Origin: Pocillopora damicornis
Lineage: Eukaryota
NCBI RefSeq assembly: GCF_003704095.1
Contig: NW_020845457.1
Coordinates: 62,001 to 126,000 of the forward strand
Length of the DNA stretch: 64,000 nt
Direction of reading: 5' to 3'
Below are positions 15,881-23,706 of this stretch, in pieces. The notes below the pieces were generated by a model that did not search any database, had not been told where the DNA came from, and was given only the letters and a program-made list of their open reading frames with translations. The position numbers were made by a program, and so were the translations under genes. The first letter of the stretch is position 1; every line of letters begins with the position of its first letter.

Positions 15881-16795
15881 ATGCCACTTGAAACTTTGTC
15901 CAAGAGTTATGAAGCCTACGAGAAAGCTTTTCAAGCCTTTTTGGACCACTCTACTGCCAGACAGTCAATTGTGAAGTGTGTACAAGATGGAACGAAGCGA
16001 GCGCTCGTGGCGATTTCATCTGTGTGTGACAAGAATAAGCCGTTCAGGATGTTAGGAATTGGTAGCGGAAAGGGTGAAATGGATGTATTGATGATCAACT
16101 CCGTAGCTGCGCATTTGAAAGCTAACGAAACTGATGTAAAACCCACTATCCATAGCGTGGTTGTGGAGCCGAGCTCATTTCTTTTAGAGAAGTTTAAAGA
16201 ATCTGCCTCGTCAATGCCAACTTCGCTGATAGCATTAGCTGAAATATCGTTTGAATGGCGGCAAATGACATTTCAAGAATACCAGCGCCTAATCGCTGAT
16301 GACAAGAGTAAACCATCCCTAGATTTCATCCACTTTATCCACAGCATTTATTACATGGATGCCGAAGATGCTCTTCGATCGTGCTTCAGAAATTATCTGG
16401 GAGAAAAGGGAGCCATCTTATGTCTCGTCCAAACCGAAGCCTCCTTCTTTGCTAAAGTGCAGAAGAAATTTAAAGGAAAGCTCACCTTTGGATCCGAGGA
16501 TATGACCATCTACACCAAAGAGGACCTCGCGGCGATAGCAGCGAGGAGTACCGGATGGTCCTATGATGAAATAACACAAGAATTTTCTATTGACATAACG
16601 AAGTGTTTTGGAGAGCCTTCAGAAGAGAGTGATCTGCTCTTAGACTTTTTAACCCATCAGAAAAACTTTCGAGTCACCGCAGATCAGGGTTTGAAGGACG
16701 AAGTTATGGATTTCTTCCGAGAGTCAATGGTGACGGACGAAAGTGGAGGAAAGTTTTTGAAAGCTGAAATGGCTGCTGTAATAATTCATAAGTAA
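15881..16795 (+). CDS. Histamine N-methyltransferase-like class I SAM-dependent methyltransferase, 304 aa, intronless
   Basis: YEKAFQAFLDHS N-terminus, LGIGSGKGEMD (motif I), VVEPS (motif II), DFIHFIHSIYYM and LLLDFLT, all HNMT-family-like. Confidence 0.85.
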   Translation: MPLETLSKSYEAYEKAFQAFLDHSTARQSIVKCVQDGTKRALVAISSVCDKNKPFRMLGIGSGKGEMDVLMINSVAAHLKANETDVKPTIHSVVVEPSSFLLEKFKESASSMPTSLIALAEISFEWRQMTFQEYQRLIADDKSKPSLDFIHFIHSIYYMDAEDALRSCFRNYLGEKGAILCLVQTEASFFAKVQKKFKGKLTFGSEDMTIYTKEDLAAIAARSTGWSYDEITQEFSIDITKCFGEPSEESDLLLDFLTHQKNFRVTADQGLKDEVMDFFRESMVTDESGGKFLKAEMAAVIIHK

Positions 16796-18312
16796 CTCCA
16801 TTGAAAGAGCTTGGACTGAAAGTCACATTAATTCCGCAATCTTATTAGCCTAACAAGACATATAAACCGACACACGACAGTTATATATCTATTTACAGCA
16901 TTTATTTCAAAACTTTGTTTCTAGTGGTTGTGACCTTTTAGGATATTTTCTTCTTGATATAAGATAAACGAGGACGATTATGGTGAAACAAAACAAAACT
17001 TATCGAGTCACTAAACGTTACCAGCCGTGACTGTTTGTTGTAACGCTACTCACCTGACATCTCATAAATCATACACGGACTTGAGCGAGCAAAGGAAGCC
17101 GCTGTCGACTTTTTCCTTAATCTAACTCTACGCAGCAGACAAGCCGCACAATCCATTCAAAGGAAGATCTGGAACTAGAAAAAAAACACTTAAATACTTA
17201 ATTCACTCGGAAATATCGTAGACCGTATTTTATACCATAAGTGTTTCCTCTATTTGTAGTAACAAAGTAGAAATTGGTCGAGGATTGCGTCAAAACACCT
17301 CGCGTGAGGTGATTAAAGAAGGGGCGCTAAATTTCAAAATAGGTTCATCGCGTTTTGTTAATGTTACCGTGGAAGTCATTGATATATACGATAGAAGACA
17401 ATTCACTTCCGAAGAGTGCAAAAGAGGCTATCAGGTTTGGCGTAACAATTTTCAAATATTCTTTAGATATTGAATCAAATATTCATGTTAAACTCTGGTA
17501 GAGATTGGCTGCTTATCTTGATACGAGTAATCGAAACAATCATAAGAGGATGTTTTCAATGACAAAAAACAAATTTACAACAGAAATCGAAAGCACCCGA
17601 TATGAGTAATCATACTAAAAACAATTATTCTCCTCGGGCCCAGGGAATATTGTGGAATAATCCACTCGGCCTCGTCTCGCGGATTATGCGGCGATTCACA
17701 TGTAACGTGATCCCAGCGATCCATTTTATTAAAATTAGGTAAAAATATTTATACATTTTTTTTACTGTAGTTCAAACTTTTCGCATCTTGAACCAGATGA
17801 TATCCGCGGGCAAATATCAGTACACATTTTCGCGCCAAATAGAGGCTATTGTTCACGTATACCTGAATATGCAAATATGTATTCACAGACAATTTCTTCA
17901 GAGCCTAGAACAGTAATAAAAGGTAAAAAATGAGCTAGTCTTCTGTTAAACTTTCCATTCAGATGCCGTTCTTCTCCTTCACTGTGTGTATTGACTGCCG
18001 CTTGGATCTACGCCACGCACTCAGTTTTGGTACAAGCGTATGTTGCGGCATCATTTGTTTGTTTATGGCGGGTTTTCTTGGTGCTTATTCAGTTTTCAAG
18101 ATGGCTGCCTCAAAACAAACTCCAAAACTCGTAGAAGTAAGATCATGCTCTATCGATTCGAAAATATCAATGGGTGGAGAGAAGTTCTTATCGCCTCTGA
18201 AACCCTCTTTACGCGCTGATTTGAAATTCGCACGAACTCTCTGACGGCTGTACGACACGATATACTCTGGGAACGAAAGTGGAAAAAAGGACTTTCACTT
18301 CCGCCTGTCAAA

Positions 18313-21300
18313 ATGGAAGCCTTGAAGACAATTCGGAGAGGTCTCGCTAAGGTAAGTTATAGTGTAATTATACATGACTGATCATCATTCAGTTCCTTTT
18401 TATTCCACCATATCTCTCTCTCTCTCTCTCTCACCTCGAAAACTTTCTTTCCTCTCCAATTCCTAAAAACTTCAACAAATCACCGACGGAAGCTACATGG
18501 GTGCACGCATACCACAGCGTATGTGTTTAGTTACAATGGTGTAAATGTAATCTTGCTTCATAACATAATTACAGTAACAGTAACGCGTGAGTAGCCAACC
18601 CCATTTCCTGATGAAGACTAGCAGAAAGCAGTCAAAACGCCGCGAACTACATCTTAAGTGACAACATCGTGAGACAAACGATTAAACAGTTTATTATTAA
18701 TTACCACCACGATGAGCAATAACCTCTTTTAGATATAAATTTATGACTTGCTCTACTAGTATGAATTTTCCAAGCTCTGTAAAGCTGACGTGTTAGAAGT
18801 ACTCAAACATTATCCTACCCTACTGCCATCTCAAGATAGGTTTGGTAAGTCATATTCTGTAATAATAATTATGCAGTAAAAGAAAATTCTAATCCTGTCT
18901 TTTTGAGACTGCAGTCAACAGATTGAATCTTTATCAAATCATTTTAAAAAAATTGAAACTTTATGAGAGAAAGCCTGTGTGCTTTGCAAATTCATAATGG
19001 AATATTAACAACCCACTTTTTTTATTAGAAACATTTAATTGAAAATGGGTCTCAATGTACTGTATAACTTAATTGAGAACATTGAAAGCCACAATTTGGT
19101 CGAATATGTCATATTTTCAAATGTAGTATTTCTATAATACTGTACATCTTGGGACAATTCGGCCAATGTTACCTCAATTTCATTTGATCTCAATTACCTG
19201 CCTAATTAGTATGATGTAGCACATTCAAGTTTGCATGTTCTCACATAACAATATTGGTTACAAAGTTATGTTTGATTTAATTGTCACATGCTATGACCAA
19301 GTTGGGAACTCTACGACTTAAGTTGCACATTAATTTTTGGGTTCTAATGGAAGTCAGGTACTGGTGATATCTTACCATACCAGATCAGTAGCAGATCCAG
19401 ACCTTGAGTTAAGGGGGGGGGGGGACCTGGTTTTTTGTTGCTTTTCTTCCTTCTGCAACTCTTTATTTTTACCCAAAATAAGGGGGAGCCCAGGCCCGCC
19501 TTGGGCCCTTCCCCTAGATCTGCCATTGTAGATAGACCTCTTACAGCCTGCTGTGAAGAGTATAGCAGAATGTGATGAAGTCTTATGTGTGCAAAGCTAT
19601 CCTGCCTTGTTAAATGTATAGTAAGAAAAAAAAATATGCTCTTGCATATGCCATACTCCGCTGATAGGCTTACAGCTGTTTGCCATTCTAGATATTTACT
19701 GAATTAAATATTTATTCAGATTTTCGCAGAGCTAGCTCATATTTGATGGAAACAGTAACCTAATTTTATCATTGCAGGTAATATATATCTAATGAAAAAC
19801 TTTTGAAATGTGCACATGCATACTTTATTAATTCCTTACTTTATTTAACCTGCAGTATACAATGATGGAAGTGAAGTTGAATTATTTAATCTAAAGGGAA
19901 CAATTCCAGTTCTAATCAGAGGTGAGATTGGATTTATGTCAACCAGTTTATACACAGTGTGATTTGGTTTTATCAAGTAAGCTGATAATGTAAGTTGGCC
20001 ATAATGGCCATTGGCCTATTCAGGTCAGCTGACTTGTTCCGTCTTAAAAATTATGATATTACCTTGGAGGCAGTCTTCAGATTGCGTGATGTAAATTTCT
20101 TGTTTATTTCAGGTGTGAAACACCAGATTCCATTGCAAATTTGGCTGCAGGAAAGACATCCTTGTGTTCCACCATTAGTGTTTGTCACACCAACAAGTAC
20201 AATGGCAATCAATCCGTCTCCACATGTGGATACCAATGGCAAAGTTTACCATCCCTACCTACATGAATGGAAATTCTCTTCTCAAGTATGTTTGCTAACC
20301 AATATACATTTTTTTCATGTGTAAAATAAGGGTCTTTTTTCTCACAAATATATATCCAATATTATTTTTTGCATCATTAAGCTTCCTTTGTGTGTAAGAT
20401 GATTTGAATGTTGGGTTATACCATATAATTTAAAATGTATTTCAATATTTATGTGTAAATTCTATAAAGCTGAAATTCTGCTTAATAGTGAGCACATTAA
20501 AAAATGAAAAGGAGAGAGAGAGGAAACAGGGTTTGTTTGGGCCCTGGAAAACCTAGTAAGTTGTGAAATTTTATTTTGACATTTTCAAGGATTGTTAAGT
20601 CCTGAAAAAGACTACAGGTCCTGGAAAGTCCTGGGAATCTGCTTAACTCAAGCAATAAAGTTTACAGAATTTTTGCTGTAAGAAATGAATGAAAACTATG
20701 CAGAAAATTGATTTTGAAATCTTAAGAATAAAAGGGTTTAAGGTGAAATTTGGAGTACTGAAAAAAAATCTGAATCATGGAAAAGTCCTGGAAAAGGTTT
20801 TGAAATTTGTTTCTGAAAAAGGGTATGAAACCTGAAGAAAAACAAAGATCAGGAAAAACATATTTTGAGTTACAACTTAGATATTAGTCTTCAACAGGCA
20901 AATAAAAGAAGAAAATTGAAAGATGAGGTGCAGGTCTTTTATAGGGAACCAAATATTGAAGTGAAATTTCAAAATCCCTCAATTCCTATGGAAACTCATC
21001 ATAGTATAGACAGGATATCATCTGAAGCCATAGGCGTAATATTTATCAAAAGAGTCAGGACTCTTAACTTCAAATGAGGTTTTGAATGCTCCTTAAACCT
21101 GAGCAGTAAATTTTTCTTTAATCTTGTTAGATTTTAGTCACTTGTTAAAAAAAACAGATTTCTACAACTTAAGACTATTACTTTTCTTTCCCAACTTGGA
21201 AAAAAGTGGTGGTAGAGTGTTCATCCACAATGTCTCATAATAGAAGTAAATTATCTATGGGCTGGTTTACAATTAAAAGATACTCCTAGGTTTAATGCAC

Positions 21301-23291
21301 TGGCTGATAATGTAATATGTTTTGTTCAATATTAAACCTGTAAGTGTCATATTCCCTTTTTTCAGGACGTATTTGATCTTTCAACTCTGCTTAAAACTCT
21401 TTGTGAGGTGTTTTCTTTACAGTCACCAGTTTTTAAACGCATGTCAGATACAAGTACGTATGCAATAATGGTTAGCTCAAAGTGATTTTGTACTTATGTA
21501 GAGAGTAATTTTACATATCTTTTGATATCCTTTCTCGTCATGCTTTAAGTTATGTTTTTGATGAATGTAATTCTATTAATTGCGTCTGATTTTTTCCACA
21601 TACGTAACTTTACATTTATCTGTTCCTCTGGAACATGAGCCTACCAGACCACAGGATCTGTTGTGTCCTCCTAATTATCTCATGTTTTTCTGCGGTTATG
21701 ATTTTTAGAGGTCTCAAAGCAACAGCTCTTTGTCTACCAAAAAGAAAACAACAGTGACAAAACAAAATATGACAAAACCAAAAAAAACTAACTTGGCTCG
21801 TGGCCTTTTAGAACGCGCGCATTTCGGCTCCTGGTTAACAATACTTCACATTTTTACCTCCTGCCCAGTGACCCAGTCGCAACAAATTGGAAATTCACGG
21901 TCTAACTTGCTGGAGGTGAATTCCTCTATACCAAGAAGAGCACCTACAACAGAAGAAAATATTGTTTTACAAAGGCGGCTTATGACGGCAGAACAACAAC
22001 TGAGAGTGAAAAGTGAAGAACTAGGCCAGCAGCGGACACATTTCCTAGCACAGCTTCTAGAAAAAGAAGTGGAAATGTCAAGCGTGCAGAGACAGTTGAG
22101 GGAGATATCACAGCAGCTTGCAGACGTCCAAGGGCAGTTACAACAAAGAGATCAAGAAGCTAATAATTTGCAGAATCAAGTTACTGCCTTGGAGAGACAG
22201 CTGAGGATTAAAGATCAAGAAGTAAATGAACTGGAGATATCTCTTTCAACAACGCAGCAAGTTTTAAATGAAAATCCACGCCAACAGGCACCTGAATGGA
22301 TCATATCACGCGATCAAATTCAACTTACAGATAAGTGCCTTGGGAGGGGAGCCTGGGGAAGTGTTGTCGAAGGAAAGTATCGTGGATGTGTCGTAGCCGT
22401 CAAACAAATCCACGAGATGATTCTGTCCCCTCATAATCGGAGATTGTTCGAGCGAGAAATGAACATTGCCTCACGATGCCGCCATCCGTGTTTGCTGCAG
22501 TTCATTGGAGCAACAAACGACGAAGGAAGTCCTCTCTTTGTCTCAGAGCTCATGGAATCGAGTTTACGAGCATTGTTAGAGCAACAATCTCTTTCCAGTA
22601 CTGAAGTGTCTGTTATTTCTCTGGATGTAGCTCTAGCATTAAACTACCTTCATTTAAAAGAACCATCTCCCATAATTCACCGTGATATCAGCAGTGCCAA
22701 TGTGTTGCTATGGCGACAAGCTAACCGATGGCGAGGCAAACTGTCAGATTATGGAACTGCTAACTTTATGCAGCAGACTATGACAGTAGGTCCTGGTGCT
22801 ATGATTTACAGTGCACCTGAAGCCCACACTAAAAGTCAAACTGTGAAGGTATGTCTGGTATGTCTGTATATTTGGTATTGATATCAGTTTTAAAGTCGTC
22901 CACTAGCCTTTTTATTGGGACTCATGATGAGATTTTGATCAAATAAACATAAACTTTCCTGAGAGATATCCATTGGTTATAATTATGGAAAATACTTCGG
23001 TATACGAACGAAGCCTAGGATTAGCAGTTTCCAAGGCGCCCCGCCAAAGCAATATATTTTTTTACTCTTCTTGTCTTTATATTTTGTTTCAAGGTCGATG
23101 TGTATAGTTTCGGAGTTCTCCTTTGTGAGATTTGCATCCGGGAATTGCCAGATCCTGACAGGCGTGACCAGCAGGTCGCCATGGTGACAGATCGCACTCT
23201 TCGAGGTCTCATTCGTCGATGTATTTATCAAGATCCTGAGGCGCGACCCACTATGGAAGACATCATTGAAGAACTAGAACAGCTAGTCTAA
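18313..23291 (+). CDS. TSG101-type UEV domain - coiled coil - TKL-group protein kinase fusion, ~542 aa, 7 exons
   Basis: Exons 18313-18351, 18760-18844, 19856-19921, 20113-20285, 21366-21453, 21869-22848, 23094-23291 (all GT-AG, 1629 nt, open frame). UEV: VYNDGSEVELFNLKGTIPV...HVDTNGKVYHPYLHEW...SPVF. Kinase: GRGAWG, VAVK, HRDISSAN, DYG, APE, DVYSFG. Confidence 0.82.
18608..18645 (+). ncRNA. Degenerate minimal hammerhead-ribozyme motif (Penelope-like remnant) in intron 1
   Basis: CTGATGA-A-GACT...AGTC-AAAA-CGCC; the canonical form would be GAAA-CGTC, so two core substitutions. Confidence 0.45.
19386..19528. mobile_element. GC-rich MITE-like element in intron 2 of the UEV-kinase gene
   Basis: Inverted ends CAGTAGCAGATC / GATCTGCCATTG with internal G/C runs. 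Confidence 0.6.
20527..20834. mobile_element. hAT-like MITE in intron 4 of the UEV-kinase gene
   Basis: CAGGGTT...AAACCTG ends with repeated subterminal GTCCTGGAAA motifs. Confidence 0.5.
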
Positions 23292-23706
23292 GAAAGGTTT
23301 TTTACAGGATCTAATGTCTGACCTCTTATCATTCTTTTGAATTTGGGCCATTTCACGGAACGTGACAGAACTGTCACATTGCCATAACTGCTTCTCATTA
23401 TATTGTCACGTTTTAGACAGATCTATAAAATTTAATATCCATGGACAGAAAGAATCTTTTACTTTTTATAATTGCTTTTATTTTTGGTCAAATTTACTGT
23501 AACAGTTGTTCAATTTTATAAGCCAACGCTTGATAAAGTAAGAAAGAAGCTTCAGCGAGTCAAGGCTTAGTTGCCCGAGACTCTTTTTTTCAGCAATGCT
23601 GTAATTGTATATAAATAGGTTTATTGATTGGAATAAGTAGACTTGATATTGAAGTGATATTGGGACTGAAGAACCCCGGTTTAGAGTTACCGCAAAGGTT
23701 TTTAAG

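Follow-up and report, generated by a model that had tools for sequence, protein, structure and literature searches.

An expressed Pocillopora gene that joins a fast-evolving TSG101-type UEV domain to a coiled-coil TKL kinase, a candidate bait-type sensor

The UEV domain of TSG101 is a classic host handle for viral budding and it is highly conserved in well-studied animals. In a 64,000-nucleotide stretch of the genome of the coral Pocillopora damicornis (assembly GCF_003704095.1, contig NW_020845457.1, positions 62,001 to 126,000 of the forward strand; this whole stretch is called the window) such a domain appears in front of a protein kinase, which raises the question of whether both parts belong to one gene and, if so, what a kinase might do with it. 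An original prediction, made from the letters alone, had proposed an in-phase fusion of a UEV domain, a Q/E/L-rich coiled coil and an intact kinase that might serve as sensor or decoy. Here, we found that this UEV-kinase is a real, expressed chimeric gene of Pocillopora and that its UEV domain evolves faster than neutral DNA while it is kept in frame and spliced.

Read directly from the sequence, the UEV-kinase gene occupies window positions 18313-23291 on the plus strand and comprises seven exons with 542 codons. The UEV domain (exons 1-5) is followed by a short linker, a helix of about 108 residues and a TKL-type kinase (exons 6-7). All introns are of the GT..AG type, all exon phases fit and the codon that is split between the UEV and the kinase part (21453/21869) reads ACA A/TG ACC. 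An in-frame stop is located 30 codons 5' of the ATG at 18313. The parts of the gene are as follows:

17970..18351, plus strand: exon 1, with the 5' untranslated region (UTR; RNA contigs start at about 17970-18000) and the ATG at 18313; coding from 18313 to 18351
18313-18351, plus strand: coding part of exon 1, 13 codons that form the start of the first UEV helix
18760..18844, plus strand: exon 2 (85 nt), N-terminal UEV helices, equivalent to TSG101 residues 15-42; the most variable exon
19856..19921, plus strand: exon 3 (66 nt), counterpart of TSG101 residues 44-64, the beta-hairpin or ubiquitin-binding "tongue", in which N-D-G is invariant
20113..20285, plus strand: exon 4 (173 nt), core of the UEV, with the counterparts of TSG101 residues 65-119 and 3 codons more
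21366..21453, plus strand: exon 5 (88 nt), C-terminal helix of the UEV and SPVF strand, equivalent to TSG101 residues 120-148
21869-22848, plus strand: exon 6 as a whole, linker, helix and kinase subdomains I-VIII
21869..21948, plus strand: linker at the start of exon 6, about 26 residues between UEV and helix; residues 1-26 are non-helical and of low confidence in the AlphaFold2 model
21949..22272, plus strand: helix, residues 27-134 of exon 6, rich in Q/E/L, unbroken and interpreted as a coiled coil
22333..22848, plus strand: kinase subdomains I-VIII, exon 6 residues 155-326, with glycine loop, VAVK, alpha-C Glu, HRD..N, DYG and APE
23094..23291, plus strand: exon 7, kinase subdomains IX-XI and TAA stop; the 3' UTR extends to at least 23449

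RNA contigs from four runs of four studies were placed on window positions 18000-23700 with a likeness threshold of 90%. PolyA RNA contigs carried the joints 18349>18758, 19919>20111, 20286>21374, 21453>21869 and 22845>23091. The UEV-to-kinase joint was present in two independent studies; a 1065-nt contig (X1 record 4) spans it with a shorter side of 255 nt, and in a 1058-nt contig (X3 record 17) exons 3, 4, 5 and 6 are contiguous. At the 5' end, X1 record 1 and X3 record 15 cover 18000-18351 and are spliced at 18349>18758, and at the 3' end the joint 22845>23091 was observed in three runs, with X3 record 20 reaching 23449. The joint of exons 2 and 3 was absent from the RNA contigs of the four runs at the 90% threshold, the most likely reason being that haplotypes are 14-25% apart in exon 2, which then falls below it. 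The polyA RNA-seq runs contained a share of 0.23-0.42 of the sampled words of the 5.2-kb stretch, the higher values (up to 0.42) being about its exon share. Introns 2, 4 and 5 had a low RNA coverage, which looks like pre-mRNA. Compared with the window, the RNA contigs differed by about 8% in the UEV exons and by 0.1-0.4% in the kinase exon. A paralog as the source of this 92%-alike UEV part was rejected, since the other two UEV loci of the genome are 60-67% alike and lack a kinase; thus, the RNA stems from another haplotype of the UEV-kinase locus. Together with the Pfam scan of the exons, these contigs indicate that the predicted in-phase fusion is real and transcribed.

Two minor features of the transcribed region were also noted. 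The long 5' UTR opens with an upstream open reading frame (ORF) of 93 codons that starts with ATG (window 17963-18244, plus strand). The RNA contigs set in at about this place, and the ORF may or may not fall wholly within the transcript. In each of the four RNA runs, the stretches 19383-19424, 19962-20001 and 20604-20673 (introns 2, 3 and 4) stood out by a very high summed contig depth and by loose ends at either side, and these are probably fragments of dispersed repeats that are expressed elsewhere.

To which protein does the UEV part go back? Pfam, solved structures and HMMER libraries were searched exon by exon. The Pfam UEV profile (PF05743) matched exon 4 with 67.5 bits (profile positions 48-100) and exon 3 with 15.5 bits. 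Among the solved structures, exon 4 aligned without gaps to residues 68-119 of the human TSG101 UEV (E = 4e-16) and exon 3 to residues 44-62 of the TSG101 structure 1kpp. Exons 2 and 5, each searched singly against the solved structures, did not recover TSG101, and their residue numbers were taken from a gapless alignment of the canonical coral TSG101 with the human protein. In a spliced ortholog (P0130, see below) the Pfam UEV match extends to profile position 121 of 121. Behind the UEV domain no proline-rich region follows, exon 5 stopping directly there; for exons 6-7, Pfam returned kinase and generic coiled-coil families but no Vps23_core, steadiness box or ESCRT-I (one of the endosomal sorting complexes required for transport) stalk, and no exon matched the Ldh family that would mark a UEVLD-type protein. 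A six-frame Vps23_core search gave no match in the coral genome, and none in the controls either.

The canonical TSG101 was located by tblastn with a coral TSG101. The genome (234.35 Mb, 4393 contigs) contains three UEV loci, and the one on contig C305 encodes canonical TSG101 at full length including its C-terminal core; its protein cluster contains XP_027050447.1 of P. damicornis. The separate canonical gene that had been anticipated elsewhere in the genome was therefore found. Its exons 2 and 3 measure 85 nt and 66 nt and are bounded as in the UEV-kinase gene, and the acceptors of exons 4 and 5 are equal too. The canonical exon 5 is much longer and continues into the proline-rich region, whereas exon 5 of the UEV-kinase uses a new donor just behind the UEV, at a place that falls within the canonical exon. 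Because exon boundaries and acceptors are shared with the retained gene on C305, the UEV part is, judged by its gene structure, a genomic duplicate of the 5' exons of coral TSG101 and not a retrocopy. The original prediction had based such an origin on the lengths of TSG101 exons 2-3, and the argument holds when the coral's own gene rather than the human one is used for comparison. Identity to canonical coral TSG101 was 52% (amino acid) for exon 2, 67% for exon 4 and 46% for exon 5, and a nucleotide identity of 52-78% between the UEV exons and their donor indicates that the duplicate is old. With TSG101/Vps23 the UEV-kinase thus shares the N-terminal UEV (the fold of ubiquitin-conjugating enzymes (E2) without the catalytic Cys), exon boundaries and the residues of tongue and pocket core, but it carries a kinase where TSG101 has its proline-rich region, ESCRT-I stalk and Vps23 core/steadiness box.

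The second half of the protein is more ordinary. Exon 6 matched the Pfam families Pkinase (91.8 bits) and PK_Tyr_Ser-Thr (74.8 bits), both above the cut-offs, and exon 7 matched the end of the kinase profile (PK_Tyr_Ser-Thr, 28.6 bits, profile positions 186-258). The kinase motifs are complete (glycine loop, VAIK-type Lys, alpha-C Glu, HRD, catalytic Asn, DFG-type Asp and APE), with DYG in place of DFG, and all six motifs were invariant in 10 of 10 haplotypes. We conclude from these motifs that the UEV-kinase carries a catalytically complete and, in prediction, active-looking kinase. Since its nearest solved relatives are TNNI3K (2e-21), CTR1, TAK1, B-RAF/RAF1 and IRAK4, sequence similarity places it in the TKL group. 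When exon 6 was modeled by AlphaFold2 with 44 family members, a single helix was predicted for residues 27-134 (pLDDT, the model's confidence score, 87-93); the kinase part of this model, which was made without exon 7, was poor (pLDDT below 50), and the helix alone was used. In Pfam the helix region had only weak matches to coiled-coil families.

More than 6000 relatives of the coral coiled-coil kinase family were retrieved at an E-value of 1e-3 or better, and this genome has at least 20 paralogous exons, none of which is preceded by a UEV. Five paralogous loci of the genome had the same layout, with the long helix and subdomains I-VIII on one exon, and the intron before subdomain IX was at the same place in all paralogs examined. 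The kinase columns were invariant in the alignment of the 44 family members, and exons 6-7 were 55-80% identical to the paralogs. On these similarities, exons 6-7 are a member of this large family. Its helix-kinase exon, its intron before subdomain IX and its TKL-type motifs are ordinary for the family, but no other member seen here carries a UEV; the UEV-kinase also has DYG for DFG, and its helix is shorter than the longer, repetitive helices of some paralogs. Two paralogous kinases lie head to head on the contig of the UEV-kinase gene, about 120 kb away from it (G000:C2092:199845-200690, minus strand, and 205043-205810, plus strand; L014), and one of them has an open frame of 635 residues with Q/E/L/T repeats of about 22 residues before the kinase.

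How the parts of this protein vary was followed in nine syntenic loci from Tara Pacific coral metagenome scaffolds (Pocillopora), whose overall divergence from the window is about 5% across 17 kb. Each has a methyltransferase-like ORF upstream, then the UEV ORF and the kinase ORF, and a CBM_14 gene downstream. In all nine loci every exon, frame and coding splice site was intact. The ATG of exon 1 and its GT donor were kept in 6 other haplotypes, with an in-frame indel of 3 nt. No stops or frameshifts were found in the UEV exons in 7-23 haplotypes per exon; their only indels were of 3 and 9 nt and in frame, while 16.5 events were expected at the intron rate. The linker at the start of exon 6 likewise had in-frame indels between haplotypes. 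Haplotype L009 resembles the window in exons 3-5 and differs from it in exons 1-2, so that we are dealing with recombinant mosaics. When the ORF around exon 4 was used for a word search, 14 clusters at 90% identity were obtained in the Tara Pocillopora metagenomes, and this ORF provides an internal control, since its intron-coded flanks are more conserved than the 57 exon-coded residues. The helix is polymorphic in length (window 21949-22272; L008-L021) by in-frame indels; thus L009/L010 have lost about 84 nt, and L008 has a block of about 33 nt that the window does not contain.

Nucleotide identity between haplotypes was 75-86% in exon 2, 85-97% in exon 5 and 90-97% in exon 4, as compared with 92-99% in the introns; for the introns that flank exon 2 it was 92-98%. 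The variability was quantified in two comparisons by Fisher tests, first in the window and six haplotypes (7 in all) against introns, and second in four haplotypes that also cover the neighborhood, against UEV codon positions 1+2:

Introns, 7 haplotypes: 11.8% variable sites
UEV codon positions 1+2, 7 haplotypes: 24.8% variable (p = 8e-9 vs introns)
UEV codon position 3, 7 haplotypes: 15.9% variable
Coiled coil positions 1+2, 7 haplotypes: 11.8% variable (p = 1.0 vs introns)
Kinase positions 1+2, 7 haplotypes: 5.7% variable (p = 3e-4 vs introns)
UEV codon positions 1+2, 4 haplotypes: 20.0% variable
Intergenic DNA, 4 haplotypes: 5.8% variable (p = 4e-12 vs UEV positions 1+2)
Neighboring ORF positions 1+2, 4 haplotypes: 0.8% variable (p = 7e-25 vs UEV positions 1+2)

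The neighboring ORF is an intronless local control (window 15881-16795, plus strand, 304 residues; Methyltransf_23 with 21 bits, below the cut-off), which is syntenic in all long Tara scaffolds. It can be seen that UEV positions 1+2 vary 2.1 times as much as introns and 3.4 times as much as intergenic DNA. Pairwise ratios of nonsynonymous to synonymous substitution (dN/dS, Nei-Gojobori) ranged from 1.0 to 2.5 in the UEV, apart from a single 6.4 where dS was very low, while the coiled coil gave 0.55-2.2 and the kinase 0.1-0.5; dN of the UEV was 0.09-0.18 in these pairs vs an intron divergence of about 0.03-0.08. Synonymous and intron diversity within the UEV region was raised as well. By these pairwise and polymorphism-based measures the kinase is under purifying selection. 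Gene conversion from canonical TSG101 or from the third UEV locus (C1420) was rejected as cause of the excess in the exons, because all haplotypes are equally distant from these genes (52-78% nucleotide identity).

Of the structural core and the key binding residues of the UEV, N45, D46, G47, T58, I70, P71, M95 and F142 were invariant or nearly so, and 22 of the 23 sequences had F88. Most states were found at positions 9 and 11 in the first helix, at 67, 68, 69, 82, 83, 93, 96, 112 and 115 and at the three inserted residues after 119; at positions 67-69 the states include K-H-Q and T-Y-N. Residue conservation indicates that the gene keeps the tongue for ubiquitin and, of the proline-peptide pocket, the core. 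PTAP-contact residues and the PTAP groove of the TSG101 UEV were taken from PMC11670305, and some highly variable positions border the groove described there. The idea that selection is aimed at this groove was dropped, as variable sites were not enriched among the contact residues (see below). The pattern read from the alignment is a conserved core with a diversifying surface, not targeted to the groove. Human Y110 marks the vestigial active site of the E2 fold, and 20 of the 23 haplotype sequences have Tyr there as well. A Cys occupies the equivalent of human TSG101 Y110 in L009:6359-6531 and L010:895-1067 (the haplotype of P0045); catalysis by this form is unlikely because the HPN motif of true E2s is not restored.

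How old is the fusion? A HMMER search with exon 4 against 1.84 billion representatives gave 1273 hits. Among these was P0130, a protein of 165 residues from a 926-nt transcript contig (L022:1-926, run SRR13196818), which represents spliced exons 3-4-5-6 of an 80%-identical gene and has its best match in this genome at the UEV-kinase locus. Compared with the window, dS was about 0.45; the UEV had a dN/dS of 0.57, linker and helix together one of 0.27 and the kinase part one of 0.25. Because an 80%-identical spliced transcript exists at this dS, the fusion is, on sequence divergence, old and has been kept for a long time. The first 27 nt of the contig look like retained intron 2. A search with the spliced fragment P0130 returned only P0130 itself. 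No annotated full-length UEV-kinase protein was found in the protein collections searched, which hold only unspliced ORF calls of both halves, and in the databases, mostly such ORF calls, the gene appeared in Pocillopora-like sequences plus this one divergent transcript. Our literature search retrieved no paper on a UEV-TKL kinase or on this coral kinase family, and none that mentions the run SRR13196818. Each of the two domains is known, as is the concept of bait fusions, but the UEV-TKL combination and its selection pattern in a cnidarian were not found in the literature searched.

What might the UEV-kinase do? Of the readings considered here we find it most plausible, though we propose it only tentatively and from sequence, that the protein is a bait-plus-kinase sensor in host-microbe conflict. 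The UEV would be the bait or recognition module, which would keep its tongue and pocket core while its surface diversifies, and which would bind a ligand that is evolving too. This ligand might be a protein of a virus or of another microbe by which TSG101 is normally hijacked, through a late-domain-type motif or through ubiquitin. The helix would hold the protein as dimer or oligomer, clustered ligand would bring the kinase domains together, and these would phosphorylate each other and thereby trigger a downstream response. The logic would resemble that of TRIM5-CypA or of plant nucleotide-binding leucine-rich repeat receptors (NLRs) with integrated decoys, with a kinase as output. The sensor or decoy function suggested by the original prediction gains indirect support, since the UEV is more variable than introns, its dN/dS is at or above 1 and the kinase is conserved; the ESCRT-regulating kinase that it named as alternative fits diversifying selection poorly.

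A more specific version appears possible but doubtful to us. According to our analysis the UEV-kinase might be an animal "integrated decoy" kinase, in which the TSG101 UEV, by which enveloped viruses and other intracellular microbes gain access to ESCRT, was copied as an alarm onto a coiled-coil TKL kinase and in which balancing or diversifying selection has made the locus multi-allelic across Pocillopora species. In TRIM5-CypA (TRIMCyp) and in plant NLRs with integrated decoys, a host domain that is targeted by pathogens has been copied onto an oligomerizing effector or signaling module; the gene of origin persists, and signs of positive selection are seen in the fused copy. Similarly, the putative bait of the UEV-kinase was copied from a host protein, the donor TSG101 is retained on C305, and in the pairwise and polymorphism tests the bait is diversifying while the output module is constrained. 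The likeness is a functional analogy only; folds and outputs are not the same, RING/B-box or NB-LRR modules standing there in place of the kinase, and ligand and immune role are putative here. If this version were true, the UEV-kinase would be the first ESCRT-derived bait receptor and evidence of an arms race between viruses and ESCRT in an early-branching animal.

Several observations weigh against the sensor. The variable sites are not enriched among PTAP-contact residues (13/22 vs 70/126, p = 0.82; residue list of PMC11670305), and variation is spread over much of the UEV surface, including the N-terminal helices. Several of the pairwise UEV dN/dS values are near 1, as relaxed constraint alone would give, and since the haplotypes are recombinant and non-independent the pairwise tests overstate the sample size. 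Oligomerization is a property that we infer. Finally, the transcript of the P0130 ortholog has one in-frame stop in the coiled coil, which may reflect a nonsense allele, a pseudogene or faulty assembly; after this stop the contig stays in the same frame and is well conserved.

The main rival, which we consider unlikely, holds that the coiled-coil kinase is the functional unit and the UEV a young or dispensable appendage that drifts under relaxed constraint. The dN/dS values close to 1 and the stop codon of the distant ortholog would fit, the adjoining coiled coil also looks near-neutral, and the paralogs work without a UEV. In addition, intron 5 has a low RNA coverage and there is an in-frame ATG upstream of exon 6, so that a UEV-less isoform starting in intron 5 is conceivable. 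However, neutrality cannot give the excess of variable sites at positions 1+2 over introns (2.1-fold) and intergenic DNA (3.4-fold). A drifting domain is also difficult to reconcile with the lack of stops and frameshifts in 7-23 haplotypes per exon, where only in-frame indels occurred vs 16.5 expected events, with the invariance of buried and core UEV residues, with the conservation of all coding splice sites and with a UEV dN/dS of 0.57 at a dS of about 0.45 to the distant ortholog.

It appears improbable that the UEV-kinase is a housekeeping kinase of ESCRT or endosomes, in which the UEV recruits the kinase to cargo marked with ubiquitin or to adaptors of the ESCRT-0/ALIX type that bear P(T/S)AP, and the sorting machinery is phosphorylated in the course of ordinary trafficking. 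The preservation of ubiquitin tongue and pocket core is consistent with such a role, as is the expression of the gene, seen in polyA RNA of field or experimental samples in at least three studies. A reader of conserved host ligands should, however, be conserved itself, and the UEV is the fastest-evolving part of the locus; canonical TSG101, by contrast, clusters at 90% or more across Pocillopora species. The restricted occurrence of the gene in the databases (Pocillopora-like sequences and one divergent transcript, among mostly unspliced ORF calls) also argues against housekeeping.

Even less credit is given to a polymorphic self/non-self or symbiosis gene, whose many alleles would be maintained by balancing selection for allorecognition among colonies or for control of the compartment of the intracellular algal symbiont, and not for pathogen sensing. 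Its allelic picture is suggestive: there are at least 14 exon 4 clusters at 90% identity in the Tara samples, the haplotypes are mosaic and recombinant (L009), and synonymous and intron diversity is raised in the UEV region, as expected near a balanced polymorphism. Since the exons read contain no signal peptide or membrane segment, the protein is predicted to be cytosolic, in contrast to the allorecognition receptors known from cnidarians. Between the symbiont variant and the bait-sensor reading there is overlap. An artefact of assembly or annotation, in which two neighboring genes or a misassembled scaffold were read as one, might be suspected from public protein collections that hold only unspliced ORF calls of the two halves, but it is refuted by spliced RNA contigs that link exons 3-4-5-6 in two studies, by the likewise spliced transcript of a further sample and by nine independent metagenome assemblies with the same order, spacing and flanking genes.

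The UEV-kinase is thus a concrete, testable candidate for an innate immune sensor of the bait type in reef-building corals; how these animals recognize viruses and parasites is, to our knowledge, poorly known. The many natural UEV haplotypes provide a ready-made panel for studies of binding specificity.

The UEV-kinase is not the only protein in which a TSG101-type UEV precedes a different output domain. The original prediction had stated that TSG101 and UEVLD are the described carriers and that kinases are not among them, which is too narrow, as the databases contain predicted UEV-RING proteins and one fish protein with a UEV and an IRE1-like kinase. In UEVLD (UEV3) the output is a lactate dehydrogenase-like domain and in the UEV-RING proteins (XP_078352472.1, XP_006816177.1, C1420) a RING finger, whereas in the UEV-kinase it is a kinase. 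When ten of the longer proteins, out of the best 150 library representatives, were scanned with Pfam, we found TSG101-like proteins, tandem UEVs, UEV-UEV-RING proteins and, as the only other UEV plus kinase protein among these ten, XP_043084597.1 (P0256) of the fish Puntigrus tetrazona, which is annotated as "IRE1-like isoform X2". Its UEV (residues 23-142) is followed by a kinase, but this is of the IRE1/RNase L type and not TKL, and there is no long coiled coil. As an automatic gene model it may be a read-through of neighbors; if real, its origin would be independent of the coral fusion.

No coiled-coil kinase was found within 10 kb of the other two UEV loci of this genome (C305, C1420). The third UEV paralog (G000:C1420, about 60262-65859, minus strand; L003, L004, L006) has exons that match a 242-residue UEV-RING protein of Oculina patagonica (XP_078352472.1, annotated "TSG101-like"), and a RING exon lies about 2.4 kb downstream of its UEV core exon. 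It would be a second reuse of the UEV as portable module, in this case on an E3 (ubiquitin ligase), and together with this paralog the UEV-kinase suggests that the UEV has been reused as a portable recognition module in invertebrates. Tandem arrangements were seen as well: P0121, P0123 and P0125 have two to four UEV domains, and among them are a 1258-residue ENA protein with four and XP_006816177.1 of Saccoglossus, a UEV-UEV-RING protein. Duplication and shuffling of UEV domains thus seem to be common in marine invertebrates.

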